Origin: Mytilus trossulus
Taxonomy: Eukaryota
Assembly: GCF_036588685.1 (NCBI RefSeq)
Contig: NC_086380.1
Location: forward strand, 19,034,001 to 19,098,000
DNA: 64,000 nucleotides
Reading direction: 5' to 3'
Shown here: positions 23,757-55,607 of the stretch, piece by piece
How the letters are laid out: each line of letters opens with the position of its first letter
Numbering within the stretch: position 1 is the first letter of the stretch
Notes under the pieces: model-generated
Database searches by the model: none
What the model saw: the letters and a program-made list of their open reading frames with translations, nothing else
Told to the model about the DNA's origin: nothing
Program-made: the position numbers and the translations under genes

Positions 23757-23980
23757 AGTTCTCAAAGGTACCATGATTATAATTTAATACGCCAGAAGCG
23801 CATTTCGTCTACATAAGACTCATCAGTGACTAAAATAGTTATAAAGCCAAACAAGTACGTATACAAAGTTGAAGAAATTGTGCCAAATACGGCTAAGATA
23901 ATCTATTCCTGTGATAAGAAAATCCTTAGATTTTCGAACAATTAAAAGTTTTGTAACAGAAAAATTATAAAACTGTTAAT
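23757..23980 (-). mobile_element. Degenerate family-1 retrozyme copy (hammerhead 23789-23830 with mutated stem III)
   Basis: ACGCCAGAAGCGCATTTCGTCTACATAAGACTCATCAGTGAC, with downstream sequence homologous to 44018-44370. Confidence 0.75.
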
Positions 23981-25403
23981 TAAAAAAACAAAATTCTGAA
24001 ATATAGGTTTTCGAACAGCGGAATATTGCTGTTTCTTTATTAATAGAACACTATGTATGTTAGAATGAAATTTTCAGTTTGCAGCAAAAACCATGTCAGT
24101 GAAAAGTTACAATAAAAAGAAAGCTTTTGCAGATAATCAAATTCAAACAAACGAATTCCACAGAGTCATGTGTTACGATGTTTGCCATGCACCGGCCAAT
24201 ATTCGAATTTGATGTGATGAGAATATGAAGTTATCTAGCTTTTTCAATCCCTATACTTACTGGTATTACGTTATCAATACAGTTCTTTCAAGTCTTCCAC
24301 AATTGTAACCTTACTATAAATGTTATAGTTTTTTATTTATATTGTATTAAAGTTTTTAGTTTCAAGTATCTAACAGATGAAATAGTAATATCTGTGTCAC
24401 TTTTAGTTTTATATTTTATTGTAGATTGCGTCCATCATTCCAGCGTTGAAATTATGATAGTGTTTGATGCACAATTTGACGACTTCATGGATCCAAAACA
24501 AGCATTAGGACAAATTATAATCATTTTAACTTCATTTAGATTTAAAGAAAACATGACCATAGGGGTTGTTGCGGATTCATCAAATCCAAAATTCATTTTT
24601 ACAACGTGTTGGTCAAAAAATTTAACTAAGGACAAACTTATTTCTGCCGCATTTACGGTTGACCAAGAAAAAACTGACAATTTGGAGATGCATCGATTAC
24701 TTGACTTTGTCATACAAAATGGGTTTTCAAACAAATCGTGTAGTTCAGATGATGCCAGTAAAATTATCTTAATTATATCAAATGGCCAATAGAGTAACAT
24801 TGCAAAGATGAAAGAGATTGTAACAGCATTGCATGCTGTCAATATAGAAGTTTATGGTATTGCATCGTCTTACAATATTTCATCGGAATCATTCCAGCTC
24901 GTTCTTGTGGATGGAAGTAACTTGATTTACATCAAAGAACAAAATGATGCATTAAAATATTGTCACCTATAATAAACCGACATATATGTTCTGAGGATGT
25001 TTTCAAGAAAAGATCTTAGTAAAATAAATGAATAGCATACTTTAGATTTAAATCTATATCTCAAGATAAAATCTGATTAAAGAAGAAGATTATCTATAAC
25101 TTATCGAGAAGATTAAAAAGATATATTTTAAAGAATTACTGTTTGCAAAAGTATAAATTGTCCAAAATACTTAGGTTTTTCTTATTCCAGGCAGATAACT
25201 TTAGTCGTATTTGGCACTTCTTTTTGGAATTTTCGGTCATTTTTTAGGCACTTTCCGTCATTTTCGGTCAAGGGAAAGTCACAATGTGTAGAATGTTAAC
25301 AATATGAAGTCAAAGAAAGGTTTTCTACATGGAGCATACGACATCAAACTGCAAGCTATAAGGGGCTCATAAACGACTGGCGTTAAAAATTGTAACAGGA
25401 AAA

Positions 25404-32690: not shown

Positions 32691-33142
32691 TTATGAGGAA
32701 CTTATTCTTTTAAGAATATCTTTCAACGGAGTCACTACTGTCATTCCTCCACAGAATGCGATAGCCATTCCAATACAGCCATTTTTATTATATGGATGTT
32801 GTACAATATAAATGCATGTCCCTGAATCACCAGGCTGTAGTCTTAAATTGATGGTTATTTGATTGTACATGCGAAATATCCTCTTGTCATTCAAAAAGCC
32901 AGTTGAAAGTTGCATATGAGCTTGTGAATTTATCCAAAGTGGTTGAAAAACATTTCCATTAACTACAGTTGCCGTTTGGCCGGTACTTGAAAACAAGATG
33001 TCTACATCAGTTTGTTTAGGAAATTGTACATTTTCCTCTAATTTGGTCATAGATCCAGCTCCTACAACTTTAGCTGTTTGTTGTGGGATACAAAAATCTT
33101 CATGATCCAAACAATTATCATTTAAAAACGGACTTGATAAAC
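32691..33142 (-). CDS. Terminal exon: protease second half with the catalytic Ser
   Basis: Acceptor tttcag at 33144-43; KVVGAGSMT, LQPGDSGTCIY, CIGMAIA...TVVTPLKDILKRI*. Confidence 0.88.
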
Positions 33143-36100
33143 CTGAAATTAAACATCCAAAATTACGTTTTAGAATTATTTAATACTGTTTGTATAGACA
33201 AATCATGTTGAATCTTATAACATAATATAAATAGCACTGAGAGGGTGCTAGAGTAGATCGGTACTCCAAGAAAAATGTGTCAACCGCTGCGTAGCCAAAT
33301 TGGCAATGCATATTTGAGGAAAACTAATCTACTCTATCACTCTATCAGCTGTTTGCTATTTAATTTATTATACTGAATGTCCTATCATTATTGTCCTTTA
33401 CAGATAAATTTTATTTAAAATTATTTGCTATGAAGTCACGTACATATACAAATGTTGCGGGTATCTGTAAAATCAACAGAAGTAACGCAATATTATTATT
33501 TTTTATTTGACTGTCAAATAATAGAATCTGACCCAAAACGTAAAACTTAAGCACTGTCTCAAATGACTTGATGTAAATTCAATTCATTGTCCTTTAAATA
33601 ATCGATTCTTGATAGGTCTGGACTGGAGGGTGACATTCAATAAAATTGTCACCCGCTCAGCCATGTGATAATTAAATTAACAACCTCGTTTTAGCCAATC
33701 AAAATATGGCATTTTAACGTGAAGTTTAATTAAACAAAATACTTACACATGAAAGAATTTGACCTGTAGTTGTTAATGTCTTTGCCATTTTGGTCTTTTG
33801 TGAACAGTTGTATCATTGGCAATTATACCACATCTTCTTTTCAATATATATTATGTGTTTAAATGCCTCGCTTTCTCGAGCAATACAAACCATTTTGTTA
33901 TTTCAATTTCATGTTATCTTCCGGGATCATTTGAATTCGAATTTAAGTAAAATTTAAGAAAGTATTACAAAATCTGTAAATAACCTTTGCATAAAAAAGA
34001 TATTTGAAAGCAATTACATATACATACCTAGTTTTAGAAAATGACAGGCATTACCATAACGATCCAAAATAAAATCATTTTGGTCAAAAGATGCATTGTT
34101 TTGCATCATCACTAGAGCTGCATCAATACTTGTTTTAAGTTTGTCATCATGATCAAATGTTCTCCAAAGAACTTTGCCACAGTTAACAGGTCCTTGCAAC
34201 GAATGGCAAAATGCTTTGGCCCCAAGAAGAGAAAAGTCGTAAGATGACGACAAAAGGGTCTGTAAATCGAACATAACATGAGCACAGGTTAAAAAGCACT
34301 CAAAATCCATGTACTTTACAAATCCCCCTAACGTTCCAATGCTTGTCTGCGGTCCTATCTTTTCTCCAATCCGTAATTTTGTAATAAAACTAATGTTTCC
34401 TTCGATGATATCTGTTGGAATGCCATGAATTGAAGTTGGAAAATGATCTTCTCCTAACGGAATTATTCCTTTCTTTTTACAATAAAGATGGATGCATATT
34501 CGCTCTTGCACGGCATGGACTCTATCAAACGATTTCGACATCAAGACTGATGGGCATATTAAAGTAACGTTTGAATGACGATTGAAAATATTTTCTACGC
34601 TATTTTGCGGCAAATTTACCTTTAAGAAGTATGAATTTGTGTATTTTGAGGAAAGCAGGTTGGAGATTGTAACGGCTTCTGAGTCATCTGAATTCGATAA
34701 GTCGGGATTTACTTCTTCAATTGTAAATCCATGATATGTATCGGGTTTTTCTTTAATAGCCGTACGAGTCAAAATTATGATAACTCTTTCATTCGTGCAG
34801 AATGAACAATCTAAAACAATAGATCCTCGACATGAACAACGTATACCTGGGAAAATGTCTGTTGCATCTTTAAGTTGATTTGCAAATTTAACAAAGAATT
34901 CCCTCGTCATATACCATGATATTGCTTTTGCTATATCTTTATCATTTTTCTCAATGGCAATATCGAGCGTTCCCTTAATATCATCAACCGTCATATTATT
35001 TTCTTTCATATGCGCTATCACCCATCTTAACAAAATGTGATATCTATTTGTCGATGCCTCAGTCAGTATATTTTGCATTAAAAGTCTGTCATCACAATGC
35101 TTCTTTGACTTGTTTGAATAAATTCGTTCAAACTCGGATAATTTGTTCTTCTTACTCTGGGATGAACTGATATTGGAATCCAGAATATGCCCTATAATCA
35201 TAACAAAAACATTATTTAAATCATTCTAGCTTTGCACAAGTGGGTATTACATTTTATTCGTTTCTATATTAAATAAGATCAGGAATAAGCGATAATTTTG
35301 TTCCAGCTATAGACTTGATTTGATTTATTACAAAGTTTATTACAGTTGGGATCATTAAAATCCCTTTTAAACACTTTGAGTTACATATTTGAATGAAAAT
35401 AGGACAGAAAGTACAACTACATGTTTAAGTTTGGGATTAATCTTTCTCATAATGGAGTTTGGGGGTGACATAAAGAGCTGCAGTTTATTATATTAAAAGT
35501 ATCTGAATTACTCCATTTCTACACTTAAATCGTTATGACAGATGCGTTCATTTTTTAAGTGCGCAAACCAAAACGATGGTGTTAAGTTCCGCGTAATACA
35601 TCGTACCCGCTGAATATGGACGCAATTTGCCATCACTGTGCTTTAACATAGTCAAGTTTTCCTAAATTCTGAAAACAATCTTTTTTATGTACTTAAATTC
35701 CTTAGTGAATCTGACCCTAACCCCCTGTGTCGTGAATGTACAGAGATAAATTTCTTGGCGGATTTGTTTTGCTAGTTTTAGTAACACGACTGGCGAACAT
35801 ATGGAATAAGAACAGTTGACCATCTCGTGTTACTTGCCTAATCGGTCATTCCTTCTGTAGTATGCCTGTAAATATCTGTATTTTATTTCCAGTCTTTCAT
35901 CTATTATACAATGGATATCAATATTGTCACAAGTCATGTTCAGCTGGTAGAACCAATCTGTAAAAAAATGATTGACATAGATTCGAAGAAGACTAAAATA
36001 GAGCTTATAAAAAGCATATGTTGCTCACCTGATTGAAATGTGATAAATCATATCACTTAAAATGTTTTTGTTGCGGATCATTTTTTACAGCTACTGTCTA

Positions 36101-39100
36101 CTATAGGTTTTTTATTCCAAAAATACAAAAAAGTAAAACACACAATTCTGTAACATGTGTAAGCACAAAACTTTCTACAGAAAGGAAATACTAATTTGAG
36201 TTTTGTGATTTATTTATAAACAATACTTTATTTGCACTAACAACAAACAAATAAGAATCACTCAATAAGTTTGTCAAGTTAGGATATACACTTTGTTGAT
36301 CTCATGGTAGATCTTGTCCTGCTACTCATTTACGTTTGTATAAGTTAGAGGCATAGGTTGTCTTAAATACACAATATTCAGAAATTTATTTCCAATTCAT
36401 CTGTTTTGATTCAATCTCCAAATATGAGTCTTGTGTAAACATTAATTCGGCGTTTTAACTTATATCCCCAGCATGTTTGATAAGATTTTATTCTATATAA
36501 ACGCATTTTGTTGTCATTTAAAATACTGCATATGTTTGCTACAACCTAAACGACACTTGAGAAGCAGTAATACAATAACTGTTTGTTAAGAATATGCGAC
36601 CATTGATATTGACATTTTCAGAAAACACAGTCATGATGGGAAAAGTGTTTAACATAATTGGACGTATTTTAAAAAAAAATCATTCAATGCATAACTTAGC
36701 TTAGAATGAATTTCTTTAGTGCTTTCCTTAAAGCATGTAAGTCTTTAAGGGTAGACATTTAGAACACTCACTTACATTTATAGTTATACTCTTCCTTTCT
36801 CGATGAAGACATCATATCTAAAAATGCATAAAACGTTATAAAAAAACAATTATCACAACGTTATTTGATATTCACAACGACTAATTAACAACAATTAATT
36901 TGAGGAATACAATTTCTCAAGGTTTCTGGAACATAATACTGGTTTTTGTTTAACTGTTATAGTATTTCATGAGCATATTCTTCAAATGAAGTAAATTATT
37001 CGGAATTTGAAGTAGAAAATGCCTGGTCTTGAAAAAAACATTTTTACTAGTTTTCTTCCGGCAACTGTGATTTCGGACAATATGTAGAAGAGAAAGTCGG
37101 ATACACTGAAAATTTGTATTCGATTTGTCTTCTCAATAGATTGCGCATCAGGATCCACCAAATGATATATAACATTTTTCTTTTTTTTTAAGTTTTATAA
37201 CCACAATATTGATGCAAAGTCGACTCTTAAGGTTATGTACTTTTCGTTTTGAATTTTCCTCGGAGTTCAGTATTTTCGATATTTTACTTTTTTTAAACCA
37301 CTAGCCTAGAAGCCGGAATCTATGGTAACAAGACAAATTACAGATTCGTTTTCCGTGAATTTATTGTTGATGGAATGTGGAAATATTCAGTCTTTTGATT
37401 ACCCGTGCCTTGATGGTTATAGCCGACTTGAGAAAGCTTTTCAGACATCTGGATTTCAATTTTCTAAAATGTATCTAATTTGGCCTTTAAGCGATTTGTT
37501 TGTGTCCTAACTATGAAAAATACAAGAAGATGTGGTATGAGTGACACTGAACAGCAAGCTATAAATGGGCCTTGTTTGAATAAAAAAAAACTTCCTGTGG
37601 CTTGCGTTCCAAAATTTTTGATAGGTATGTTTTGTGATTTTATACAGAATTTTAACATTTGTAAGTATTTTAATTTGTTTTCAGCGCAGAACTACTTCAT
37701 TGATGTACTCAGTCTAAAATTACACATGTTTCGTGTCATACGGTTATTATTCTTAAAGAATGTGCGACCTTCGAAAATGATACTTCTCAAGAAATATTAG
37801 CCTGTAAAAGTAAATGAACAGAGTATATTAACTTTCACTTACGTTTATATACAAGCCTTTCTTTGTTCGATGATGTCAGCATTCTGATAACTATAAAATA
37901 GCATAAATTCCATGCAAATCATTGTTTTTATCAAAACGTAATAGTTATAAAGACCAAGTTACCACAACTCACTTGATAAATAAAGGTTATGTAACTCATT
38001 TTGCTTTGTATATTCTAGATCACTTATTTACTAAAGGTACATTAAATATTAAGTCATTAACAGCATATCCGTACTCGTTTTTAAATGTCTATCGTCTAGA
38101 ATCACATAGATTGGCTTCGTTTGAAATGTTTGAGCTTTTGATTTTGCCATTTGATTAGGGACTTTCCTTTTTGAAAGTTCAGTAGTTTTTTTCATATAAT
38201 ATAAAATTGAGAGTTGAAATGAGGAATGTTTCAAAGAGACAACAACCCGACCATAGAAAAAACAACAGCAGAAGGTCATCAACAGGTCATCAATGTTCAT
38301 TTGTCTCTATTTCTGTAGAAAAGTGACAATCCTATTCAATAAAGATTTCAGTCTAGGGCACCTGCTCGTGAGTGATTCGAATTCACAATTTCAGTGTTCA
38401 CATGATAGTTATACAGTAGTTTTACTACTAAAACCACACGACCAACCGACCAACGAGGTAGCTCATTAAATATGACTACTGTTCAGGACGATTAAATCAA
38501 TAATAAAGCGTTCATATTTGAAACAGTGTATAAAGAACACATTGGAATTTATTGCTAGTCATTAAAGAAATTAAATCATTTTTCGGAGACAAGGATTATC
38601 TTAATGAATTTTTGTCGAATAGTTGAATTTTCGAATCTGATAATAAACTGGTAACCAGAAATTAATATTTATTTAATAAACAATACTAGTAGTGTATAAA
38701 AATGTTCACCAGGTAAATTCATTTACCACAAAAGCAACGATCAAATAATGTCGGGTTATTTTTTATGATAGTTCTGTTAGTCTGTTTATTGATTGTTTAT
38801 ACGACAAATAATATGATACTTACATAAGATAACTAACAGTCCTGGAGAAAATAGTATAACGATAAATATTGTGACTATTTTTTGGAAACAACAACCTGGA
38901 ACACACAAACGAAATTTTATAAAAGAAACAAGACAGCTTTTCAGATAAATATTGTATTAAACAATGTACGCTGCTCTGAATTATTAAACAAACAATTGTT
39001 GCTCATTGTTGAAGGCCGTATTGTGACCTTTTGTTGCTAATTTCTGAATTTTTGGAATTTCTTCGCAGGAATTATAATTCCCACATCTTTGTTTTTTATC

Positions 39101-42100
39101 TACCTTTGGTGGTTTTTTGACGAGCCTGCATCTTTTGTTGCAAAAAGCTCGACATAGGGATGCGGCGGCGGCGTTAGCTAACTTCTTTCAAGCTTTATAT
39201 TTTAGAAGGTAGAGGACCTGGATGCTTCATACTTTGTATATAGATGCCTCATGTTACGAAGTTTCCGTCAGTCACATGTCAAATGTCCTTGATCTCATTT
39301 TCATGGTTCAGAGACCACTTGAAAAAAAGTTCAGATTTTTTGTAATGTTGAATTCTCTCTTATTATAAGTAAAAGGATAACTATATTTGGTATGTTCGTA
39401 CCTTGCGAGGTCCTCAGGCCCGTCAGTCAGTTTTCACTTTACCTCGATGTCATTTCATGGATCAGTGAACAAGGTTAAGTTTTGGTGGTCAAGTCCATAT
39501 CTCAGATACTATAAGCAATAGGGCTAGTATATTCGGTGTATGAAAGGACTGTAAGATGTACATGTCCAACTGGCAGGTGTCATCTGACCTTGACCTCGTT
39601 TTCTTGGTTCAGTGGTTATAGTTATGTTTTTGTGTTTTGGTCTGTTTTTCTCATACTTTATGCACTAGATCTACTATATTTGTTGTATTGAATGATTGTA
39701 AGGTGTACATGTATAGCGGGCAGACGTCATCTGACCTTGACCTCATTTTCATGGTTGAGTGGTCACAGTAAATTTTTGAGTTTTGGTCTTTTTATGTAAT
39801 ACTATATCCCATAGGTCAACTATATTTGGTGTATGGAAACATTTTATTATCTATTTGTCAGTCGCGCAGGTTTTATTTGACCTCGATGTCATTTTCACGG
39901 TTCATTGCTCAGTGTTAAGTGTTTGTGTTTTGGTCTACTTTTCTTAAACTATAAGTAATAGTTCAACTATATTTGTTGTATGGAAGCATTGTTAGCTTCA
40001 CATGTCTGTCTGGCATGGTTTATATGACCTTGACCTCATTTTCATGGTTCATTGGTCTTTGTTTAGTTATCTTGGTTAATGTTAAGTTTATGTGACAGTT
40101 TTTAATAATGCTTTATACTTATGACTTTCAAAATAACATCAATGACTAGTAAAGAAGGCGAGATATTTCAGCGTGTGCACTCTTGTTTTTCAATTAACGA
40201 GATTTCAACTACGGTTTCCTTCCAAAACAGTCATTGATTATTTCAATTTCAATTTCAACAACATGTAATTACAAAATAAGATAAGAAACAAACACTGGTC
40301 AGTCCGTAATTCAAATCGGATAGATCTTACATAAGTTTACTAGTTATTTGACTACGATATATACCGAATTCAGAGTCACAACAAGATTGCCAAAATCTTG
40401 ATTTACATCACAAAATAACAAAAAAAAAACAACAACCGTCATAAAAACAAAAATTACCGCAAAACAATACCCATTAATCTCCTTTTCAAAATCACTTCCT
40501 CTGCTATTCTAAGACTGTTTCATTTCATATTCCTTAAAATTTTCCTACTGACATGTCTCAAATATCCGCGAAAACAGTTGGTTAATTACGTTGGTTTTCT
40601 CGTTTGAATGGTTTTACACTAGTAATTTTGGGGCCCTTTATAGCTTGTTGTTCTGTGTGAGCCAAGGCTCTGTGTTGGAGGCCATACATTATCCTATAAT
40701 GGTTTACTTTTTTTAAATTGTTATTTGGAGGGAGAGTTGTCTCATTGGCACTCACATCACATCTTCCTATATCTAATAACTGGTATTCCCATTCTTTAGT
40801 TGTCTTTAGCTAATCCTCTGACTTTTTTATTTACAAATTTAGAACATCAGGAAGCTTGAAAAACATATTACTGCAAGTTTTCAATAAGATCTTAGTTAGC
40901 AGGTGTATGATTGATACATAATTTTATATCCAACTCACATAACAATATAGCTACCATCATTATTTCAAAATCATCTTTGCAATCACCGCTCACATCATGG
41001 GGCACGCGATATGAGAATTCTGAAAATGTTAAATGCAAAAATTTATCATCATCTTAATCTTAAATCAAACAAATTTATATGCTCTTGTGATTTCTTATCT
41101 GCGTACACTTCGGAAGTACCTCAAATCAGTGCCATTTTTGGTAGGGTTTGTGTGGCTCAATCTAAAGTGTTTTGTTTACTATGTTTGGCTGTCTATCCTC
41201 TTTTTTTACTTTTTTAGTCAGTTTGTTCTGAACTGATGAGTTTAAATGTCCATCTGGTATCTTTCGCCTCTCTTTTTTATTAGAAAGATAGATCGATATG
41301 TAGTCGATACTCAATCGCGAGTAAATTAAAACAATCTCCAAAATTGACAAAATTATCTTCCAAAAGTGTCCATACCATTGTCAGGGTATGCGATTGACAG
41401 AAATGAATAGGTCTTTAGATTACCTGGCCGTCTCGTAACACATGTATGTTTTAAACTGGCTTTGTGATAATTGATTGACATATTTTCTCTTGAACCTGAA
41501 GCCCCTTATAGCATCCAATTTTTATTTCTTATTTATGAGCACTAATTCTGAATTTTGTTAACAATATTTGTTTCCATGTTGTTGCTTACTCTAAATCAAC
41601 AGTTTATATTCTGAGTTAAACGGGTTGAGATAATGCGGGTGCTTCAGATAGCAAGGAGTTATTAGGTTTATGTATAGGTATTGCAACTTAAACAGTCTGA
41701 CTATTACTTCTAAAAATAAGGGATATCACCCAGAATCTGCCATAACAGCTATATGTGTTACCCTATTATTTACATCCAAAGAGAATTTACAAAATTTTAA
41801 ATGTTGTTCATCTGCAGTTATTTCCTGTCATAACTTATTATTTAAGTATTTATCCCCTCCGGCTGCAAGTTTTTCAAAACACCTCACACCTCACTACCAA
41901 ATAACAAGACTGGCTTAACAGAATGATAAAAATTATAAATTAATATCAGGAAGATTTTTTTTTAATTTGAATGGTTCTTTTAAACATCGGTTATACAAAT
42001 CTTGTTTAGCATTTGTAAAACTGCCATTTATACTTGAATACTAGTTCTAAATATTTATATTGTTTTGCTCTCTCAATAGGAATATCACATTTAAACAAAG

Positions 42101-45100
42101 TATCATTTAACCTACATGTTTTATTGAAAACAGGCGATTTATTTTTTTAACATTTAGTTCTAAACCTTACTTGTTACAATAGCTAAAGAGCATTTCTTAA
42201 CACATCTGTAACCCCGTAGCAGTTTCTGATAGTAAAACAACATCATATGCATGCAAGAGACAATTTAAATCTTTTGTATGAGTTTTACTGGTTTATTATT
42301 AACAATATTTTGGAGGTCATTTATAAATAATTTAAACATATAAGGGCATAAAAGAGGGACGAAAGATACCATTGGGATACTCAAACTCATAAATTGAAAA
42401 CAAACCGACAACGCCATGGCTGAAAAATGATAAACACAAACAGACAAACAATAGTACACATGCCACAACAGATAAAACTAAAGAATAAGTAAACACAAAC
42501 CCCACCAAAAACTGTTGGTGATCGCAGGTGCTCCGGAAGGGTAAGAAGATCCTGCTCCACATGTGGCACCCGTCGTGTTGCTCATGTTATAATACATCCG
42601 ATAAAAAGTCTAATTTGGTAGGTCACATTCATGAAAGGGAAGGGGGTTGAAGTTACGACGTAAGGAACATGTCCGAAATTATCTGTGAAACCGTTATTCC
42701 ATAAAGGTCAACCAACTCGTGATGGCGTGTGTAAAATTTACGAAGTGATTATTTCAACTGCACCATTTGGAACTCTTGGTTTAATAGCTTCCTTGTGAGC
42801 AGCAACTCTCTATCAAGAAAATCAGTATAGAAATAGAACCAGGGGAATATCGTAACAATTTGGAATATATATACTCCGTATGCATGTTCTGTTGGAATGT
42901 TGCACTCAAATCAATGAATGTGTTTGTAGATTTTTTTGTGTTCTGTTAAATTGTCCCTTTTAAAATTGTTATACGATGATGACTGATGTAGCCATATATT
43001 GACTGTTATATTTATTGTGTCTGTTTATTGAACCTATCATTGTAAATATAACGGAATTTGATGACCCTGTCATTAAAGTGAGAGGGTTAGCGCTATAGAA
43101 CCAGGTTTAATCCACCATTTTCTACATTGGAAAATGCCAGTACCAAGTCAGGAATATGACAGTTCTTGTTCATTCGTTTTTGATGCGTTTTGTTATTTGA
43201 TTTTGCCATGTGATTATGGACTTTCCGAATTGATTTTCCTCGAAGTTCAGTATTTTTGTGATTTTACTGTTTGCTACTTAGAAATCGATAGATCACAACT
43301 GAAAACCTGAAAACATATTTTGTGTCGTTAGGTTTTGTTTTCAACCGACCCTTATTGCCAATATCTAGATGTAAGTCACGATATGAGGCCGACTTAACTG
43401 TATCTGTCGTATTCTTTATATCTAGTTCGATTTGATAGATGATTTCAAAATCGTCACCAAAATTTGATTTATTAGGGAGAGAACATCATCTTTATAGTGA
43501 AAAGTAAAGTTAAAGAATATTGCCAAGTTCTTATCTTTCTTCCTTAAAAATTTCTGCATGAAGTCAGCTTCAAAATAATAAAGTCAAAATAATAAAGAAA
43601 CAAGTCGATAAGAAGAGGGGCACAATTGGTTTCCATTGGAAAGCCGACAGTCTGTTGAAAAACACGTATTCCGAACGTCAATTAAGAAATCAAGCATCTT
43701 GATATTGTCAGATTTAGATATTTTATGTTTTGAATCAGAGTGATCCTTTACAAAGTAGGATTTATCCCTCCCTAAGACAAAATACTTAAATCTATTGCAA
43801 TATTAAAGAGAGTTAGATTGTATGTAGTCTAAAAGATATTTGACTTTTTTTTAGTACCCACATCTGATTCACGCCACCTCTACAATCAAGGTTTCGTGCA
43901 GAACTTGGTAGACCGTTATGTGTAAGGACACTTATGTAGTTAAGGTATCCAATACAAGGATGGAAGATCCAGTTCTTCATCTTTGGTTGAAATCTAAAGG
44001 AACATAGAACAGACCTATAGTTATCAAAAGTACCAGGATTATAATTTTATACGCCAGACGCGCGTTTCGTCTACATAAGACTCATCAGTGACGCTCAGAT
44101 CAAAACAGTTAAAAAGCCAAATAAATACAAAGTTGAAGAGCATTGAGGATCCAAAATTCCAAAAAGTTGTGCCAAATACGGCTAAGGTAATCTACTCCTG
44201 GGGTAAGAAAATCCTTAGTATTTCGAAAAATTCTAAGTTTTGTAAACAGAAAATTTATAAAAATGACCATATAATTGATATTCATGTCAACACCGAAGTG
44301 CTGACTACTGGGCTGGTGATACCCTCGGGGACGAAACGTCCACCAACAGTGGCATCGACCCAGTGGTGTAATTATCCGGAATTTACTCTTTGGTAAGTGT
44401 CGTAAGGGTTTATGTTGAGTTTCAAAGTGATTTGTCAATACCTAATTCGTTTATCGAGTAGTTATTAAATGGGTTTTACACACAAAACCATGCTGTTTGG
44501 GGCTTTATCTGCGGGAACAACATATTTGTCATGGAGGCAGGATAAGTGTTTTGCGATATTTTGGTTTATAAAGATTGACGTAGCATGGGCATTGATGGAC
44601 CCATTCAGTTTCTTAATTCTGATTTGTAGGGGAAGTGTTATTGACAACGATGAGGTCACCGGTAAAAAACGTGTCCAGCCGGATTATGTGTGAATTGGGA
44701 ACTAGAACAAGTGCAATCAGGAGGTTTAGTCTGAAGTCGTCAATATTAATATCCTGTAAAACGTGTTTGTAATTGAAAAGTTTAGTTGCAATAGGTTTGG
44801 TATAGGTATAAGAAATGATTGGTACAGACTGGTCTTTGAAATGAGGAGGTATTTTCGATTTATGAATTTATGATGAAGGACTTTGCCCAAGTTGACGCCA
44901 TTGAGACCTTTTTGGGGCAATGGAAAGATTAAGAAAAGATCGTTTCTCTTTTTTATCTTTTTTCAATGCAAACTGGTTTGAAAAGTCGGTGACTTACAAT
45001 ATCCAAAATAATAGCTGTACGTTTGTATTAGTTTGAATGAAGGTTTGTAACAGTGGTTTCAAAACATTACTTGAACAGAGTATGAAGTTTTGAAATGGAT

Positions 45101-48100
45101 ACAAAATACTGTTTCGTGCGAATGTGATGAATTTTTCGCATTATTTTAAAATCTACATTCTTGTCTTTACTACAGGGCGATAAGTAAAATACCCGCAGGA
45201 AAAACTTCCTTTGTGTGTTTTCGAATATATAAATATTCTTTGGGCGGACCCTTCAATCAATCGGATTCAGTAACCTACAATGTATTCCGAATAACAAAAC
45301 GAAAACATAGCATATATTTTCACTTATGGATCACGCTATTTCATGGAGCGATAAATAGATTTGAACAGTTATGTCAATTAATAATATTTCAAGAAAATAT
45401 CAAATGACCAAAAAAAACGAGTAAGTATACCAATAAGGGTTTTTAAAAATTTGGACGAATCCTAAATTTTGAAGTCACATTTTCACTTGTATTGTACATG
45501 TTGTAGTCTGTTGTTTGTTTACAAAATATTTGACAATCACTGGCATTTTATAGTATGCTATATTTTCACCTCTTGGGATTGTGTTTGTTGCAATTGTATA
45601 TTGTGTTATGTGTCATCGTCTGTATTTCGATGCATATCATATTTATAGTCTTATTTGACTTGATTTCCTTTTTCTGTGGATAGTCATTATTATTATTTGG
45701 ACTAGTCTTGTGAAAATAGTTTTGAATGTTTGGATCTAGTTCCAAATATGAGTTTAAATTTCAAGATTATATTTTCGTCAAAAAAACCGTCAGTGTTTGT
45801 GGTGTCCTGTGCTTTCGTTATTTAGAGATGTCTGATATCATTCTGTGATTTACATGTTGTAATGTACTTTTATATTATTTATTTATTAATACATATCGGT
45901 CTGTTATGTAGTGTTGTATTGTGTGGTATTGTATTGGTTGCAATTGGTAGTGTATTCCTGACAAGAGAGAATTTCGGCTAGCTAAAATGTCCTATACTAT
46001 GAAACCAATATGACAGTTGTTTGTTTTGTTTTGTTGCAGTTCAGTGTTTCTATTGTTCCGTTGTTTTCCTTGTATAGTCGATGTGATTTTTTTCATTTTA
46101 ATTTTGTTACCCGGATTTGTTTTTTTCTCTAAAAGAGGCTGCGAGACATATAAAATTCTGAAAAAATGAGTCGCTTTTAACAGTCAGTATCGTTCAAGTT
46201 AGTCATATTACGCTAAGGAACATTGATTATGAATTATTCCCTTGTAAGTGAATAATTTGACAACATTGAATCCGTATTCGTGTGAACTTCAGTAAGCTAG
46301 ATATGGATAACTCATGCATAATTATTTGTCATTGCAGCTAAGAAAAGAGCACTTAAGATACTATTTAAAAAAACGCATGAATTGTGCGTGTTCGGTTTAT
46401 TAAAGGGAAAGAATGTCAGCATTGATAGTAACCAACGGTAAATCAGTCAATTGACTGATTTGACCTAGAAAAAAATCATTCTTATACAGGTAAAACGATG
46501 ATTAACATACATATTTAATCTTTAATATAAAATTTAACAAACCAAGAAAAATCCAATTTCATGATTTTGATTTTGATCTATATCAATATGCATGTTTATA
46601 TCTCTTATATGACCACCTGTGCAACACCAAGATAGAAGCTACTAATGGGACTTTTAGGGAATTCCGTTAGAGGATTACCTTACAAAGGCAAATAAAAAAT
46701 ATTAACATAATGCATCAGTGCATGGAAAAGGTTTGAGATACACGAATTCAAGCTGTGTGTCACCATAAATACTTCAACCCCGTTCAAAAAAAATTGTCAT
46801 TGCTAAGTGTATCCCTCCGTTCTTAGAGCACACGTACCCCACAAAGAAGGAACTTGACTCGCACATTTCAAAAAAAGAAACACTACAAACTAACACCACT
46901 GAAAATGTTTTAATCATCAGTGTTTCATGTTGTCCTCTTCTTCTCTGAGTTATTTACTCAGTTCTAGCAGAATAAGTGAAACAGCGAGACAGAAGCTAGT
47001 AATTGGACATTCAAACTTCTATGGAAGAAAAACAGACAAACTAATAAAAACAAAATGCATCAGTGCAAATAAACAGTGCATATATACGGTTTAAGAAACA
47101 CGACCCAAGATATGTATCACCGTAATCATTTGAAGTAGCCTTTAACCCCCTCTCGTACAATATAAACATATTAATTACATGTTGAGTATTTACCTGAAAT
47201 CATAAAATAGTTCACGTCTGTGGAAAGTGCTTTGCCTCTGTCATACATATTTTGGATGATGAACATATCATCTGGATTTATCGGACACAAAAGTCCGTGT
47301 AAATTACCGCTGCTTTTTGTAATAAAACCCATTCCTAGTCCAACTTTTGGGTAATACTTCATAAATGGCATTGAAAATTGTAGTACAACTGAGGAGTAGA
47401 GATGGTAATCTATTTTACGTAAGATAAAGTTTTTTAATTTCAAGAAGTCGAATTCTTGAATTTCCTGTGAACTCCACAGCTTTGAAATTAATGATAGATC
47501 CCTCTGTTCTTTGAGTGCACCGAGTGCACCGATACTAAAACGCGTTTGCCATGGATACAATCTTTGAGAAACAAGGGAAGAGATTCCAGTGGCGCTGTGA
47601 CCAACCATGTGGGAATTTTTTGTGAGCGAATATTGCTCATCTAATTCAAAATACATTTGAAGGCTGTTGATTATCCCGTTGAATATATCCAGTACCATAT
47701 ACCCTGAAATAAACAGTAACCATATTTAAACGTTAATAAAATGTGTATCACAATTGTGTGTGTATGTGTGTGTGTATGTGTGTTGGTGCGTTGGTGTGTT
47801 TGTGTGAGTGTGGTGGGATTGATTTTGACAACAATAAGATAAGTTCGAAAATATGACTCGATTAAATTTAAACAACGTTTTTCTAACAAAGTTTGGGTAT
47901 GGATAAATAAAATAAGAAAGACGGAATTTCAGTATGAAAATATATATATATATATAAAGAAACTAATTAATAACAGTGAATATGTATAATCAGGGATTAT
48001 GTAGAATCCCTAACATTTTCAGGGATTATGTATAAATTTGGATATTATCGACTATTTAACATTTGCCCTGCTTTTTTACAGGCATATCTATCAAATTCAC

Positions 48101-49769
48101 ATCTGTTTTTACCACAATACCAACATTTAAATGTCAGTATTCACCGCAGAAACTGATACATGTTCAGGGATTATGTATAAATTTGGATATTATCGACTAA
48201 AACATTTGCCCTGCCTTTTTACAGGCATATCTATCAAATTCACATCTGTTTTTACCACAATACCAACATTTAAATGTCAGTATTCACCGCAGAAACTAAC
48301 GAAAACTTTAAAAAGACTTATTCAAAAGGGATACAGTTACGATACTGTTGTCAAGTCATAAAAGATTGCATATTTTGGCGTTAATATTAATTCACTTATA
48401 GGGTCTTTGCATCGGAACTAAACACATTTATTCAAAAAACAGTTGTTGGCATGACACGGGTTATGTTCTTCTCATATATGTAATGATGGTATGATACTAA
48501 ACCCCTAACGGAAAGGATTGTGCCTGATATTCATACGATGAAATCATAAGCTTTCAATCATTTTGAGTATGGAGCTGGCATGTCAGTTAACTGCTTGTAG
48601 TCTGTTGTTATTTATGTATGATTGTCATTTTGTTTATTTTCTTTGGTTACATCTTTTGACATAAGACTCGGACTTATCTTGATTTGAATTTTAAATGTAC
48701 GTATTGTTATGCGTTCACTTTTTTTCATCATTGGCTAGAGGTATAGGGGATGGTTGAGATCTCATAAACATTTTTAACCCCGCCGCAATTTTGCGCCTTT
48801 CCCAAGCTAGGAGCATCTGGTCTTTGTTAGTCTTGTATTATTTTAATCTTAGTTTCTTGTGTACAATTTGGAAAATAGTATGGCGTTCATTATCAATGAA
48901 CTAGTATATATTTGTTTAGGGGCACGCCTCCGGGTGCGGGAATTTCTCGTTACACTGAAACCCTGTTGGTGACCTTCTGTCTGTTCCTGTGCCGAGCATA
49001 TTTTTTAGTGACATAATGAGGTTCAACACGTGAATAAAATATAAAGGGAAAAACTCATCACTTAAGATCCACACAGTAGATCAGGAATGAAAACTGTTAA
49101 CTTCAAGGAATAAAAAAAAGCTTTTAATTATTGATTATCCATGTAATCATGTTTAAATTGGTAGAATGGTAATTAAAATTTTCAGTGAATATATATATTT
49201 AGGTAATCTTTATAATCAATAATGATTTTACTGATTCTACATAATCCCTGAAAAATTAGAGATTCTGCAGAATCCCTGATTACACAAATTCACTGTAACA
49301 TATATACGTATTTCAAACCAGACATCCCATCCTCTTTCACACGCATTTTTTATTCATCGTGACCCGAACTTTAGAAACTATCCTGGTAAACTTATCAATC
49401 CTTTTGTTAAACTTAATCTAAAGGTTTACTATTTCAAAATTGTATTTTATATATGAACTGTTTATTTTATTGGTCTTAATATTGATATTGCTATATAACG
49501 TAATGGTACTCAAATTGCAACGAGTACCCAAATTGCACCTATTTAGCAAAAAAAGCGACGGAAATCTTTCCTAGAGACTAAACAAATTGTATTTTTATGA
49601 TCCGATATTATGCACGTCTATCAACATAGGTAGATATATTTAGATATACACAAAACGTTTACAGTATTTATCAACAGATGAAGTGTTTACTGAAAAAGCA
49701 AAATGAACTGAAACGTCGCCATCCGACGTCATCAAAACGTCATCTTTAAACAATTAGCAAATACAATAT

Positions 49770-49804
<35 letters not shown>

Positions 49805-52800
49805 AAATATGTTGTCAAGAATCCATTTCTAAAAAAAAGAAGAATAAGCATAGACAAATATCCAATTGTTCAAAATATTTGAAAAAAATAAACAAAAGCT
49901 CAGTTATTCGACTTTTGACGATGCTATTTGGGTACTCCTCATTACAGAATCATTGATGATTTGGAGGTTGGTTCAGACCAATGTTTCTATGATTCTATAG
50001 GAATTGAAAAACAAAACGGTGTACCTATATAATAAAGAATGATACGGCTACAAAATAAACACAAAATGGAAATGTTTGTATTGATCATAAAAAAAACGTA
50101 TTTGAATAAACTGTCAAAACAGGTGCAATTTGGGTACCGTCACATACCGTTACATATACACATTTATGCATCTATAATCTGTCGCTGATTGTATCTTGAC
50201 ATTGCACTAGGTCATGTTTTCTCGGACTTTTTATGACGTCTGTACACTAAATCAATTGGGTGTTTAACGTAGTCTGATTGATAACTGAGTCTGAGATACT
50301 TGATTTTTATTTAGTTGTTATTTGCTTTGAAATACTTGTCAGTAACTGCGATTACTTTCAGATCTGTACTTAGTTTCTTCTTTTTTTGTTGTACCAAACC
50401 ACGTCCACGCTGTGTTTTTGTATGTTGTTTTTCTTTTTGTATACAAGTCTAAATAAGTATGTTTCAAGGTTGATAGCTTTATTTTGTGATGAATGCCGAC
50501 AAAGTTTGGATGTAAAATGCCTGATCATGAAATATGTCTGCATGTTGATTTTGTTTACGAATGATTTCCTTTTGACGATGATAAAATGTAGTCAATGTTT
50601 TGACAAAGGCGTGATATCGACACCACCGGTGTATTTTTTATTTATTTTTTTAATTATGTCTTTCCACCTTTCCTCGGAAAAACGTATTGATTTTGTTCTG
50701 GTTATTATTTTTTGTCTTCCGCCTAATTATTTTCTTGCGTAGTTTTGTTGCTTCAAAAGGTGTCGCTTAGATATTTGGAATATGATATAGTATAGTTTAT
50801 ACGCTTTTAAAACTGACAACCGCGTAACCAAATACTTTACGTTGTTAGAGTAATCTCCCCAAACACTGTTTTTCTTGTGCCTACTACTCCTTCCAAACCG
50901 TAAAAAATTGCGACAAATTCATTTTACCTAATTGATCCTTACATCTTCAGGATAAGGATTTTTATTTTGACCGAAGCTATACAGAGACTCCATATGAGAG
51001 TTATGCCCCTTTTGTATTTGATGTAAGTGATATGCGTTTTTAACTGGTAAACAATAAGTGACATACGTCAGGGTCTTTGAATTTGGGGTCATTGGTCCAA
51101 AAAATGAAAAATAGGTCAAGGTCAAAGGTCAAGGTTATATTTTTAATTTTTGATTTTTGCTGATTTTCACTTTTTATTAAAACCAGTATAACATATCGAC
51201 AAATTATGTTTACTAAATTGTTAGTGGCGACATGTTGTAACACTCAAATTTTGATTGCGAAGTAAATGGTTGTTATCCCCCCTTTTATGTTTAAAATAAC
51301 TCATTATCCATACATATTACAGACCTAAGGTCTTTTTTTAGGTACTCGGTTTATGACCTTGAAATTGAGGTCAAGGTTATAAGCAAATTCGACTTTCTAG
51401 ATATTGTCCCTTGCTCTAAATTCATCTTTATACATCATAAAGGAATTGCATGACATTTAAATTGAATTTCAATGATATATTGTAAATGGTGGAAAGACCT
51501 GTAATTGTTCTATGAAAAATTCGTTTTTAATTAGGTCTTTCCACTTTTCTGTGGAAAGACCTATTGTTTTTCTTCTGATTATTTTTTTTTTTTTTTTTTT
51601 CTTCCGCCTAATTTTGTTCTTGCGATAAACATTTGTTTCGCAATATGTCGCTTAGATATTTTTTATATGATATCGAACAGTTTATGCGCTTTTGAAATTT
51701 ACCCTGCGTAAACGAATACTATTCTTTGTAGGAGTTATCTCCCAAAACACTGTTTTCTTTGTTAGCGCATCTCCTTCGCAACCGTAAAAGATTATGACAA
51801 ATTTATTTTACAAAATTGCTCGTTATATCCTTCGCATGATTTGTCCTATTTTGACCGAAGCGATATGACCGCTCCATATGAGAGTTATTTCCCCTTATGC
51901 ATCTGATATAAGTGATATGAATTTCTATCTTATAAATCATAAGTGAAAGAGACCTAGGATCTTTTGATTTGAGGTCCTTGGTCCCAAAAAATGAAAATTA
52001 GGTCAAGGTCAAAGGTCAAGGTCATATTCTGATATTTGAATTTGGCTTATTTTCACTTATATCCAAAGACTGTATAAGATATCAACAAATTATTTTTACT
52101 AAATTGTTAGTTGCGACATGTCGTAAGATGTAAATTTTGATTGCAAGCGTACGTTGAATGTAAAAGGGAGTTTTCTCCCCTCTTGTATGTAAAAATACGC
52201 GTTTGGTGATATAACTCATTAACTAAATATAATTAAGACCTATGGTCTTTTGATTTGAGGTCCTTGGTTTATGACCTTGAAAATGATCTCAAGGTCATAG
52301 CTTAATTTGACGTTCTAGATTTTGACCTTTGCTTTTACTCTATATGTATACATGATAAAGATATACAACTTTTAAAAAAAGGTATCAAACCATTTAACCT
52401 TGTAAAAAACAACCGGAAGTGACCTTTTGTAAACCGGAAGTAGCTATTTTTTTGTACTTTATTAATATAAAAGTATATAGAACCAAATATTTTTGGAATC
52501 AGTGTCAAGTAAATATTCAAATATAATCGGAAGTAACATTTTTCAAACCGGAAGTAACAAATTATCTCCCTTATTTAAAAAAAATGTATGGAAACAATAT
52601 ATTTTTGGAATCAGTTTACTAGGAGCTATCATTTGACGATTGAAATGACATTTTAAACTTAGTTTCACAACTTTTCATATCAAAATACATTGTTTTGATG
52701 GAAAGACCTTCAATTGTTCTCTGAACAATTGGTTTTTAATTATAAAGAGATTTGTTCCGTTGAAATCAAAAACGCTGTAACAAATCTAACATACACGAGC

Positions 52801-55607
52801 CATTCGAGCAAGTTGAGATGTGTAAACATCATAAGATGTTGAAAAGGGAACACCACCATCTAAAAATGGACAATTAATCACCTATTGTATCGTACATTAC
52901 TGAAGTAAGAATCCCCTTAGATATCAAGACCCAGGAAAGGGCAGTGTTCATTGTTTGACTTAGCATCTTTCAAGTCAGTTAAGAAAATGAATTTCTTTTT
53001 ACTGTATATCCTGAACTCGTTATTCTTGAGATCCAATATTTACCAAATACTGTGAAAGTACTTTAATTCGTGGGTATCAATTTTAGTGGTTTAAGCAATA
53101 TTTACATGTCCGTGGCTTAAATTCGTGGATTTTAGTTTTGCGTTATTCAATATAATTATTCTATAGATCATATCAGTAGTCCAACCTACCGATGAGGATC
53201 TTTCCATGTCTTGATTTGGACAATTGTTGTTTGATTTCGTTTGTCACTTAAATTCGTGGATAAAGTTATCCACGAAAACCACGAAAATTAGTACCCAACG
53301 AGATTCTAAAATTAGATGCCACATTAAAAATGACATGTATTTTCTCGTACGGTCTTGTTTAACTTACTCACTGTCTCGATGACAATGCCAGCGATTTCGG
53401 GATTTCTAAATATTGTCTTAACATGCATACTAAGAAACTTTCCATAAAATTTCATCCAGTCGGGTTTAATAATAAAACATCGATCATTTAAAACTATGTT
53501 TCAAATTTATATTGTTTCCATGGTAACGATAATCATTTTCAACCATTCCATAAATGAATGCACGACTTTACAAAACTTTAAATTATTGAATACTTAGGCT
53601 CGTCTACATCAGAAATATATTACCTCGGCTGTATTATTAATTTGACAAAACCTTTAGTTTTTTTTTAGACTTTAGTGCTCTTCAACTTCATAATGTTTAT
53701 AATGGCCATTCTAACTTTTTTATTCGGTTGTCAATAGTGAACTTTTGTAGACGAAACGTACGTCTGGCGCAAATATAGATTTCCAAACCTGGTATCTATG
53801 AGGATTTTTTTTACATGAGAGTGCTCATTGTAGTATAATTACATTAACATCGAGTCAGTCAATTCCGAGAAATATCATGGACAAAAGATGTGGAAGAATA
53901 CGAAAAAAAAGAAAAAGGTAACTTTGTTGTGGGATGTTCTTATTATTATAAATTGAATAATTTAACTTCGACATAAAGTGTGGGGTTGTGATCAATTTCA
54001 TTTTTTTATGTAATGAACAGTGTTCAGTGGTGTGTATAATTGTTTTTTTAAATAGTTATTACGTCCAAAATATTTGTATTTTCGGTACAAAATTTTCTCT
54101 GAATATATATTTCTACGATGTTCTACGCCTATGAGAAAGATTTTAACGAATTAGTTCAACAACTATACCATTAACCTTCACGGAATAGGTTCTTTGTATG
54201 TAGTCTTATCATTAAGACCAGGAGTGTTGACTGTCGGGGAAAAAACACATTTTAAGTCAATTATTATCCGTGATCGTTCAAACCAGGCTGCTTATTACGC
54301 ATATATCCCATAGAACTAGAGATAAAGAATAAAACAGATACAGTTAAGTCGGCCTCATATCTTGACTTACATCTAGAAATTGACAATGAGGGTCGATTGA
54401 AAACAAAACTTTACGACAAAAGAGATGATTACAGCTTTCCAAATGTGAACTTTCCATTTCTAAGTAGCATCATTCCTACAGCACCTGCATACAGTGTATA
54501 TTTCTCCCAATTTATATGATATTCCCGTGCTAACATTTCCTATCATGATTTTCTTGATAGAGGGTTGGTGCTCACAAGGAAGCTATTCAATCAAGAGTTC
54601 CAAATGGTGAAGTTGAAATCATCTCTTCGTAAATTTTACGGACGCCATCACGAGTTTACCGTTATGGAATAACCGTTTCACACATGATATTGATTATGTT
54701 CCTTACGTCGTAACTACAATAATCCCCTTCCCTTTCATATATGTGACCTACCGAAATAGACTATTTACCGGATTTGTTATCTCATAAGCAACACGACCGG
54801 TGCCACATGTGGAGCAGGATCTGCTTACCCTTTTGGAGCTCCTGAGATCACCCCTAGATTTTGGTGGGGTTCGTGTTGTTTATTCTTTAGGTTTCTATGT
54901 TGTGTAATGTGTACTGTTGTGTGTCTGTTTGTCCTTTTAATTTTTAGCCATAGCATTGCCAGTTAATTTTCGATTTGTGAGTTTGACTGTCCCTTTGGTA
55001 TCTTTCGTCCCTCCTTGTGTATTAAGTTGATATTCTGTGAGTATACTGATTGACGCTATTTAAGCTGTCATATTTTAATAATGTAAAATGAATACTCATT
55101 TTTTAAATAAAACCATTTGACCTAAAACACTATTTATATGATTGAGGAAATTATAGACTGCTGGTATCAATAGATTGCAAATGTAATTTGTAAAACGAAA
55201 TGAATGTTTAGCGCCATTGTCTTTTCATTGTCTTTGTCTTGTTTGTTAATTGTTTAATATCTATTGGAGAGAGCAAAACAATTTCCCGTCGCCAGATTGT
55301 CTGTGATGTACACATATAAAAGAAATCATAGACTTAAATTAAGTTTTGAATGAAGTGGCATGTGTATCCTTCCAAAAAAATTCTCATGGGATAATTTTTT
55401 ATATCAAATTCTGGTCGACTACGATGGATTTTTTTAACGATCTTGACAAGCTATAAATAATTATGTTTGCCTTATTTATCACTCAATTTAAAATTAAATG
55501 CTTTCCTTACCTGTGTTAACAAGCAAGGCTGAAAATTTTTGCGTAACTAGTTCATGCCCGTAAAACGCAATAATTGTTCCAAAAAAACAGTTAAATGCAA
55601 AACCCAT
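32691..55607 (-). CDS. Predicted ~834-aa membrane-anchored NAL1-like (bacterial-type S1) serine protease, 8 exons
   Basis: Exons 55607-55511, 47703-47194, 38895-38824, 37890-37843, 36817-36776, 35957-35838, 35191-34028 and 33142-32691. All have AG acceptors and GT donors (one GC: AG|GCAAGT), all introns are phase 1, and the joined frame of 2505 nt is open. Linkage of the first two exons to the rest is less certain. Confidence 0.65.
34028..35191 (-). CDS. Exon: helical region, NAL1-like N-domain and first half of the trypsin-like protease (His, Asp)
   Basis: CIHLYCKKKGIIPLGEDHFPTSIHGIPTDIIEG; GTLGGFV...FLTCAHV; SIDAALV. Confidence 0.88.
38824..38895 (-). CDS. 72-nt exon encoding a transmembrane helix
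   Basis: ttccag|GT TGT TGT TTC CAA AAA ATA GTC ... ATC TTA T|gtaagt = GCCFQKIVTIFIVILFSPGLLVIL. Confidence 0.7.
39113..40187 (+). mobile_element. Helentron-type non-autonomous element (HINE-like) with internal ~147-bp tandem repeats
   Basis: T-run then GACGAGCC...AGCTCGAC inverted motif and (GCG)n. TGACCTTGACCTCATTTTCATGGTT recurs at ~39286, 39440, 39586, 39733, 39880 and 40027. Ends ...GGCGAGATATTTCAGCGTGTGCACTCTTGTTTT. Confidence 0.75.
41330..42250 (-). mobile_element. Degenerate 3' fragment of a LINE (CR1/L2 group)
   Basis: Minus-strand EQHLKFCKFSLDVNNRVTHIAVMADSG*YPL resembles the LINE C-terminal E..H.KFCK..L.V......AV..ELGR.PL. Confidence 0.55.
44018..44370 (-). mobile_element. Full-length family-1 retrozyme monomer
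   Basis: Reverse complement of 16956-17292 with high identity. Confidence 0.85.
44051..44094 (-). ncRNA. Type I hammerhead ribozyme (intact)
   Basis: Minus strand: GCGUCA-CUGAUGA-GUCU(UAUGU)AGAC-GAAA-CGCGCG-UC^-UGGCGU. Confidence 0.9.
47194..47703 (-). CDS. 510-nt exon encoding an unrecognised domain
   Basis: tttcag acceptor, open 170-codon frame (GYMVLDIFNG...VNYFMIS), cag|gtaaat donor; non-repetitive and protein-like composition. Confidence 0.7.
47754..47812. repeat. Imperfect (GT)n microsatellite
   Basis: Read directly. Confidence 0.9.
47974..49295. mobile_element. TIR element (CAGTG...CACTG) enclosing a Penelope-like family B 3' fragment
   Basis: ~58-bp TIRs at 47974-48031 and 49238-49295. 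The interior encodes KCQYSPQKLTK.L.RLI.KGYSYDTVV.S, with a ~147-bp tandem duplication at 48020-48300. Confidence 0.65.
49500..50145. mobile_element. MITE-like element
   Basis: GTACCCAAATTGCACCT (49524-49540) is inverted as AGGTGCAATTTGGGTAC (50121-50137). Confidence 0.55.
50650..52740 (+). mobile_element. Two head-to-tail HINE-like elements (50650-~51525 diverged; ~51530-52740 more intact)
   Basis: Each starts with a GTCTTTCCAC...GGAAA inverted pair and ends in GGAAAGACCT plus a hairpin (CAATTGTTCTCTGAACAATTG in copy 2); collinear homology. Confidence 0.75.
53049..53305. mobile_element. MITE-like element
   Basis: TTCGTGGGTATCAATTTTAGTGGTTT (53067-) is inverted as AAACCACGAAAATTAGTACCCAACGA (53276-). 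Confidence 0.55.
53620..53800 (+). mobile_element. Decayed family-1 retrozyme (catalytic core destroyed)
   Basis: ...TTGTAGACGAAACGTACGTCTGGCG is retained but CUGAUGA is mutated. Confidence 0.6.
54290..55015 (+). mobile_element. Penelope-like family A 3' fragment
   Basis: IYPIELEIK..TDTVKSASYLDLHLEIDNEGRLKTKLYDKRDD.SFP.VNFPFLSS.IP.APAY..., followed by the family 3' end. Confidence 0.85.

Follow-up and report, generated by a model that had tools for sequence, protein, structure and literature searches.

We asked what kind of protein is made from a gene of the mussel Mytilus trossulus that lies within a 64,000-nucleotide stretch of contig NC_086380.1 (assembly GCF_036588685.1, positions 19,034,001 to 19,098,000; this whole stretch is called the window, and all coordinates below are counted from its first letter and, unless marked otherwise, refer to the minus strand). 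A first-pass annotation had described, between 32691 and 55607, a hidden eight-exon gene for a receptor-like, membrane-anchored serine protease. The gene was not hidden; it is RefSeq locus LOC134727419, whose 866-aa product XP_063447871.1 is annotated as an "uncharacterized protein", without a functional name. We hold it to be rather probable that this gene encodes a membrane-tethered, cytosol-facing effector protease from a bivalve-expanded, immune-type family, and not a ligand-binding receptor. What is new is an animal, bivalve-expanded family of NAL1-like proteases, with immune-style fusions and with one membrane-anchored member.

The eight exons of the earlier model were compared singly with the retrieved gene models; for whole-protein work we used XP_063447871.1 and its Mytilus galloprovincialis orthologue, VDI06722.1. 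The three open reading frame (ORF) fragments on which the model was built were present as claimed, and the exon lengths sum to 834 codons, the size given for the joined frame. Its five small exons had the coordinates, peptides, phase (1) and open frames described for them; the accompanying claim that every splice site was canonical failed at exon 6, where the donor at 35838 is a non-canonical GC (gcaagt). The borders of the large exons lie at 35191/34028 and 33142 and differ from the ORF limits. Six of the eight exons are shared with the RefSeq model: exons 3 to 8, together with all split codons, were residue-identical to XP_063447871.1, and exons 1 and 2 were found in neither the RefSeq nor the M. 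galloprovincialis model. A scan of 12 kb (47193 to 35192) for open-frame segments in phase 1 to 1 that lie between a pyrimidine-rich Y-AG acceptor and a strong donor returned exactly five candidates, namely the four small exons of the earlier model and one further exon at 40939-41019, here called exon B; all five are used by the RefSeq model. Randomised sequences (first-order Markov, base transitions preserved) gave 0.5 +/- 0.8 candidates, with a maximum of 4 in 200.

Read from the membrane inward, exon 3 (38824-38895, RefSeq residues 236-258) encodes the core of a transmembrane helix, IVTIFIVILFSPGLLVIL; exon 4 (37843-37890, residues 260-274) encodes a basic juxtamembrane stretch, IRMLTSSNKERLVYK; exon 5 (36776-36817, residues 276-288) adds a short charged linker; and exon 6 (35838-35957, residues 290-328), a conserved exon of the family, contributes a beta-hairpin and the start of a helix. 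Exon 7 (34028-35191, 387 codons, residues 330-716) holds the first protease barrel, preceded by a family-specific N-terminal module of about 267 aa, and exon 8 (32691-33142, residues 718-866) holds the second protease barrel with GDSG and the stop codon (32693-32691).

The protease motifs reported in the first pass (TLGG/LTCAHV, IDAAL and GDSG) were all present. The catalytic codons follow the His-Asp-Ser order of the PA clan, with His at 34280-34278 (TCAHV), Asp at 34124-34122 (IDAAL) and Ser at 32825-32823 (GDSG); across 61 family members the His is invariant and the Asp nearly so, and GDSG is invariant in 12 close members. Single-sequence searches with exons 7 and 8 against the PDB found nothing, Pfam found nothing on the three ORFs, and the ESM Atlas gave no usable match to exon 7. 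A profile of the 61 members, searched against 177,635 distinct PDB sequences, recovered nine rice NAL1 sequences at E of about 3e-6, the sole other row having E 3.7. When the 61 members were run against Pfam, Nal1_C was matched in 10 (E down to 1.8e-6), Peptidase_S64 in 3 (best E 1.2e-6) and Trypsin_2 in 1.

Structure comparisons used the AlphaFold model of VDI06722.1, for which the mean pLDDT (predicted local distance difference test) was 77 and exceeded 90 across most of the catalytic core; this model of the orthologue shows the two-barrel fold. In Foldseek, NAL1 chains occupied ranks 1-31 (E 2e-9), followed by alpha-lytic protease and the streptogrisins. In VIA-align, SGPB gave Z 19.3 with a root-mean-square deviation (rmsd) of 2.2 A over 175 residues, NAL1 gave Z 16 over about 204 residues at 20-22% identity, and HtrA/Deg gave Z 14. 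No animal trypsin appeared among the top structural matches of either program, and there was no Pfam Trypsin match. These results bear out the earlier assignment to a NAL1 or bacterial S1 type rather than to the animal trypsins, and the model points to a chymotrypsin-fold protease of NAL1/streptogrisin/alpha-lytic type with an intact His-Asp-Ser triad. A search of BFVD returned generic 3C-like matches and two uncharacterised proteins of Virus NIOZ-UU157, A0A0N9MU75 and A0A7S9XDX3 (Foldseek E 1e-10 and 3e-9), whose match to the full model, over 369-463 aligned columns, is roughly on a par with that of NAL1. A viral origin was considered and rejected, the family having conserved introns and many intron-bearing paralogues.

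Rice NAL1 (PDB 7Y77 / 8PMG / 8HAU; Pfam Nal1_C, PF25819) is thus the nearest solved relative by both sequence profile and fold, being the only PDB family that was significant by profile and the top one in Foldseek. The contexts GTLG..LT..HV and GDSG are common to both. NAL1 is a cytosolic enzyme that is not secreted and has an accessory module at its N-terminus, and the mussel protein would share these features if the topology predicted for it below is correct. The differences are that the window's protein falls under the Pfam Nal1_C cut-off, that the ATP-binding domain of NAL1 was matched weakly, and that NAL1 is without a membrane anchor. For the protease domain the closest structural fit was to streptogrisin B and alpha-lytic protease, which we take to be MEROPS S1E (Z 18-19 and rmsd 2.2-2.4 A over 175-180 residues, with 14-23% identity); these, however, are secreted and disulfide-bonded and have a folding pro-region, the likeness to which is here at noise level (E 0.1), and neither matched exons 7 or 8 at the sequence level.

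The N-terminal module comprises the first 267 residues of exon 7 (34389-35189) and was predicted by AlphaFold, with confidence (pLDDT 87, predicted template modelling score, pTM, 0.84), as a helical bundle joined to an alpha/beta domain. Compared with the PDB it had no convincing counterpart: the best Foldseek hit was the alpha-lytic pro-region at the E of 0.1 just given, VIA-align gave Z<=6.2, and these matches were treated as noise. Against NAL1 only pieces of about 80 residues aligned, weakly (E 0.3-0.9). Several Cys and His positions are nearly invariant in the module and could form a metal site. Inside exon 7 there is also an in-frame GT..AG segment of 159 nt (34688-34846) that is removed, exitron-like, in the Mytilus edulis model CAG2232284.1; 53 residues are lost by this removal, including a nearly invariant R-C-x-C motif of the module.

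The protease belongs to a sizeable family. In the 1.3-Gb genome exon 7 had 27 further matches (about 25 paralogues), all but two of them stop-free, and exon 8 had 25 (about 24 paralogues); exon 6 had nine paralogous matches, four with E<0.01 and five weaker (up to 0.84), every one of which is followed on its own strand, 0.5-11 kb downstream, by a paralogous exon 7. With HMMER, exon 7 recovered 358 cluster representatives. Every named member is from a bivalve (Mytilus, Saccostrea, Ostrea, Tegillarca), and a search with two conserved peptide patterns yielded no relative in bacteria or archaea. The protease module occurs alone in proteins of about 500 aa (for example P0005, from a spliced transcript) and also at the C-terminus of nSTAND3 NTPases (5 proteins), of DZIP3-type HEPN proteins, of ankyrin-repeat proteins and of one FN3 protein. 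Lineage-specific expansions of STAND and HEPN immune and apoptosis genes have been described in bivalves and other sessile marine invertebrates, as have trypsin-like effectors in bacterial STAND systems (PMC8195603). By analogy, the fusions and the expansion seen in the bivalve family are of the pattern described for such lineage-specific immune and apoptosis expansions. The family also resembles the bacterial STAND and ternary conflict systems (Kaur et al. 2020, 2021) in joining a protease module to STAND or HEPN within lineage-specific expansions (PMC8195603); it differs from the bacterial effectors in that all of its named members are bivalve and the peptide-pattern search reached no prokaryotic relative. 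Very large HEPN_DZIP3 and nSTAND3 expansions in the genome also belong to the pattern of such lineage-specific expansions: HEPN_DZIP3 gave 582 first-look candidates, of which 150 were scored and all lay above the cut-off, and nSTAND3 gave 595, of which 21 were scored; dense clusters occur on the window's own chromosome (e.g. C8:68.7-69.4 Mb).

Where the mussel protein begins decides how much of it would precede the membrane. Exon B, overlooked in the first pass, runs from phase 1 to phase 1 between an acceptor ttttcag and a donor gtgagt and is identical to residues 209-234 of XP_063447871.1. Its end reads ...EIMMVAILL plus a split Cys, the two adjacent ATG codons (40960-40955) opening the sequence MMVAILL and the split Cys. 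The M. galloprovincialis orthologue (640 aa; 93% identical and 98% similar over 640 aa) begins with a Met whose counterpart in the alignment is the first of this pair. We infer that the functional product most likely starts at this ATG and has about 639 residues. Such a start leaves about 13 residues ahead of the transmembrane helix, so that the protein would open directly with the helix and have almost no ectodomain.

The RefSeq model reaches exon B from a first coding exon at 59244-59865 (identical to its residues 1-207), which lies in an integrase ORF with a DUF5641 match and leaves through a GC donor (gcaagg, 59244/59243), the second GC donor in the gene. This exon is part of a decayed BEL/Pao-type long terminal repeat retroelement (59110-63995), in which gag-like, protease/reverse transcriptase, RNase H and integrase frames remain in pieces. 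The 866-aa protein could be real as written, with a transcript begun in the transposon joining an integrase fragment to the anchor and protease: the exon is in frame and is spliced via its GC donor, and gene predictors normally accept a GC donor only given transcript support. We give this little credence, however, for the exon belongs to an integrase ORF whose neighbours are frameshifted, and the M. galloprovincialis orthologue begins at the exon-B Met. The exon at 59244-59865 is probably a transposon-derived chimeric 5' end that forms no part of the functional protein.

The transmembrane helix noticed in the first pass is genuine and very hydrophobic. Counted from the exon-B Met, most of the first 32 or so residues are hydrophobic; the Kyte-Doolittle mean over 19 residues reaches 2.9 in M. 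trossulus and 3.2 in the M. galloprovincialis protein, the substitutions between the two retain hydrophobicity, and the AlphaFold model of VDI06722.1 places residues 2-37 in a single long helix. A single-pass protein should have a hydrophobic helix some 20 residues long that is kept from one species to another, as is the case here. When the other 36 family members were scanned in the same way, their hydrophobic windows were at most marginal (1.9-2.3) or were interrupted by charges; among the members scanned, a strong transmembrane helix therefore occurs only in this orthologue pair.

The basic juxtamembrane stretch was likewise present as described: a single Lys precedes the helix, whereas R, K, R and K (net +3) lie in the 15 residues that follow it. 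By the positive-inside rule the more positive flank of a helix lies in the cytosol, and therefore the C-terminal side should be cytosolic. The protease thus probably faces the cytosol, as had been proposed in the first pass; besides the charge balance, the fusion partners in the family (STAND, HEPN, ankyrin) are cytosolic, and signal peptides are absent from the family. The opposite, type II, orientation would make the N-terminal helix a signal anchor and the protease luminal or extracellular, as in the vertebrate type II transmembrane serine proteases. Hydrophobic segments at an N-terminus can enter the membrane in either orientation, and if the 227-residue retroelement-derived N-terminus were translated, so large an N-terminal domain would tend to stay cytosolic. 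The arrangement of hepsin, matriptase and TMPRSS2, a single N-terminal anchor followed by a C-terminal serine protease, is indeed similar. Type II transmembrane serine proteases have extracellular S1A trypsin domains, stem domains and an activation cleavage site; the mussel protein differs in having no match to Pfam Trypsin, in having NAL1 and S1E proteases as its nearest folds, and in its predicted orientation. With the charge balance also favouring a cytosolic C-terminal side, the family partners being cytosolic, and no comparable hydrophobic segment or signal-like N-terminus in the 36 other members scanned, we judge the type II orientation to be unlikely.

The first pass had placed a signal peptide (exon 1) and an ectodomain of about 170 aa (exon 2) ahead of this helix, giving a type I receptor protease with a cytosolic catalytic domain activated by a ligand. 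Both exons are open, frame-compatible, in phase 1 and flanked by plausible splice sites, and between 59 and 41 kb no long phase-1 candidate other than exon 2 occurs. Neither was part of any retrieved gene model, so that none of these models carries a signal peptide and a folded ectodomain together: both RefSeq and VDI06722.1 reach the transmembrane exon from exon B instead. Exon 1 (55511-55607), a 32-codon hydrophobic stretch running from ATG to GT, is thus unsupported. Exon 2 (47194-47703) lies largely within the ORF at 47171-47698 (175 codons), and it is probably coding DNA, because a frame of this length is rare at 33% GC (about 0.016 expected per window by chance, estimated from base composition) and is open in a 75%-identical relative. 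That relative (P0151, from a Logan contig) was the only homologue among 5.8 billion proteins; its frame is open despite two in-frame indels, and it keeps the start of the 47171-47698 ORF, reads through the proposed donor and ends at the same stop. Exon 2 has no paralogue in the genome, against about 25 for the protease exons, and no Pfam match, and the ESM Atlas gave only unconvincing outer-membrane-barrel look-alikes below the recognition mark. The frame contains a single Cys and lacks N-X-S/T sequons, an unusual composition for an ectodomain.

Because it has no paralogue, is read through in its homologue and goes unrecognised by Pfam and the Atlas, exon 2 is best treated as an orphan frame in a long first intron, and the ORF may be a taxon-restricted small gene nested within the first intron of LOC134727419. 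Just upstream of the proposed acceptor of this orphan ORF, at about 47740-47800, there is a (CA)n-type microsatellite. With the ectodomain unsupported, the picture of a ligand-binding receptor falls; only some 13 residues precede the helix when translation starts in exon B. We therefore regard a type I receptor protease as quite improbable, the length and openness of the exon 2 frame notwithstanding.

A number of observations weigh against the membrane-tethered, cytosol-facing protease that we favour. The evidence for its predicted topology consists of charge counting and the cytosolic character of the family; the RefSeq coding sequence begins 227 residues before the exon-B Met, in a retroelement fragment; the window's protein stays below any Pfam threshold, whether searched as exons or as the full RefSeq protein and even at E<=1; and a homotrimer prediction for residues 308-640 spoke neither for nor against assembly. 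The anchor itself is absent from M. galloprovincialis VDI06723.1 (606 aa) and from M. edulis XP_071180981.1 (501 aa) and CAG2232284.1 (392 aa), and therefore the anchored form may be one isoform, or may be specific to some species. A search for exons 4-6 in further models, for which the N-terminal 72 residues of VDI06723.1 served as query, matched only VDI06723.1 itself, and no convincing transmembrane exon was found within 10 kb upstream of each of the three closest paralogues.

These observations could be taken further, to mean that the anchor stands outside the functional protein, which would be a soluble cytosolic protease starting at a Met in exon 4 or 7, as VDI06723.1 or XP_071180981.1 does, with everything upstream being 5' untranslated region or annotation noise. 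Consistent with this, of the five orthologue models that are full-length or informative at the 5' end, three are without the anchor, the remaining family members are soluble, and the paralogue P0005 (513 aa) begins about 20 residues before the conserved module. Exons B and 3 to 5 are, however, open in phase 1 in two species with conservative hydrophobic substitutions; all five candidates of the exon scan are in frame; and two independent annotation pipelines translate the helix. We accordingly assign a soluble product a low probability and retain the anchored protease as the preferred reading.

For the anchored protein the predicted order would be an anchor (the first 32 residues or so), a short basic linker, the helical and alpha/beta module, and the C-terminal serine protease, the last being held at the membrane and facing the cytosol. 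STAND NTPases act through oligomerisation. NAL1 requires its hexamer, a cage, for a catalytically competent geometry of the triad (PMC12012508). It is for these two reasons that we propose activation by assembly or proximity: the protease would be an intracellular effector switched on by self-assembly or proximity. A further parallel is offered by yeast Ssy5 (Peptidase S64) of the SPS amino-acid sensor, the Peptidase_S64 model having matched 3 of the 61 family members. Ssy5 is an intracellular, receptor-activated protease of chymotrypsin fold that works at the membrane and has a large N-terminal prodomain. It differs in being peripheral, without an anchoring helix of its own, and the window's protein itself does not match Peptidase_S64. 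Rather speculatively, a NAL1-type protease activated by assembly may have been taken up by bivalves as an effector of death or immunity, and LOC134727419 would be its membrane-tethered version. The protease would then play the caspase-like part that lies downstream of vertebrate NLRs, being attached to STAND NTPases, to HEPN RNases and to repeat sensors, and in the tethered version the catalytic domain might be switched on, or released by Ssy5-like autoprocessing, upon clustering of the anchors.

The window also contains a C1q-domain ORF, two VWA-domain ORF pieces and a reverse-transcriptase fragment (1638-2024, 23063-24789 and 17283-17771, all on the plus strand). The C1q ORF exists as the first-pass annotation said; the immune significance attached to it carries little weight, C1q genes being very numerous in mussels.

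NAL1 has been called plant-specific (PMC12915138), and our literature search found no paper linking NAL1 to animals or to Ssy5. The family described here is an animal one and numbers at least 25 genes per mussel genome; among solved structures, only NAL1 can be recognised from sequence as its relative. Pfam has no model dedicated to the family, and the fold predicted with confidence for the 267-residue module at the N-terminus is without a counterpart among solved structures. The family is linked to STAND NTPases and HEPN domains in oysters, mussels and ark clams; both are hallmarks of the expanded immune and cell-death systems of invertebrates, and the family is thus a concrete candidate for a protease effector, other than a caspase, in the innate immunity of bivalves. 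LOC134727419 would be a natural membrane-anchored variant of this protease, useful for following its localisation and activation.

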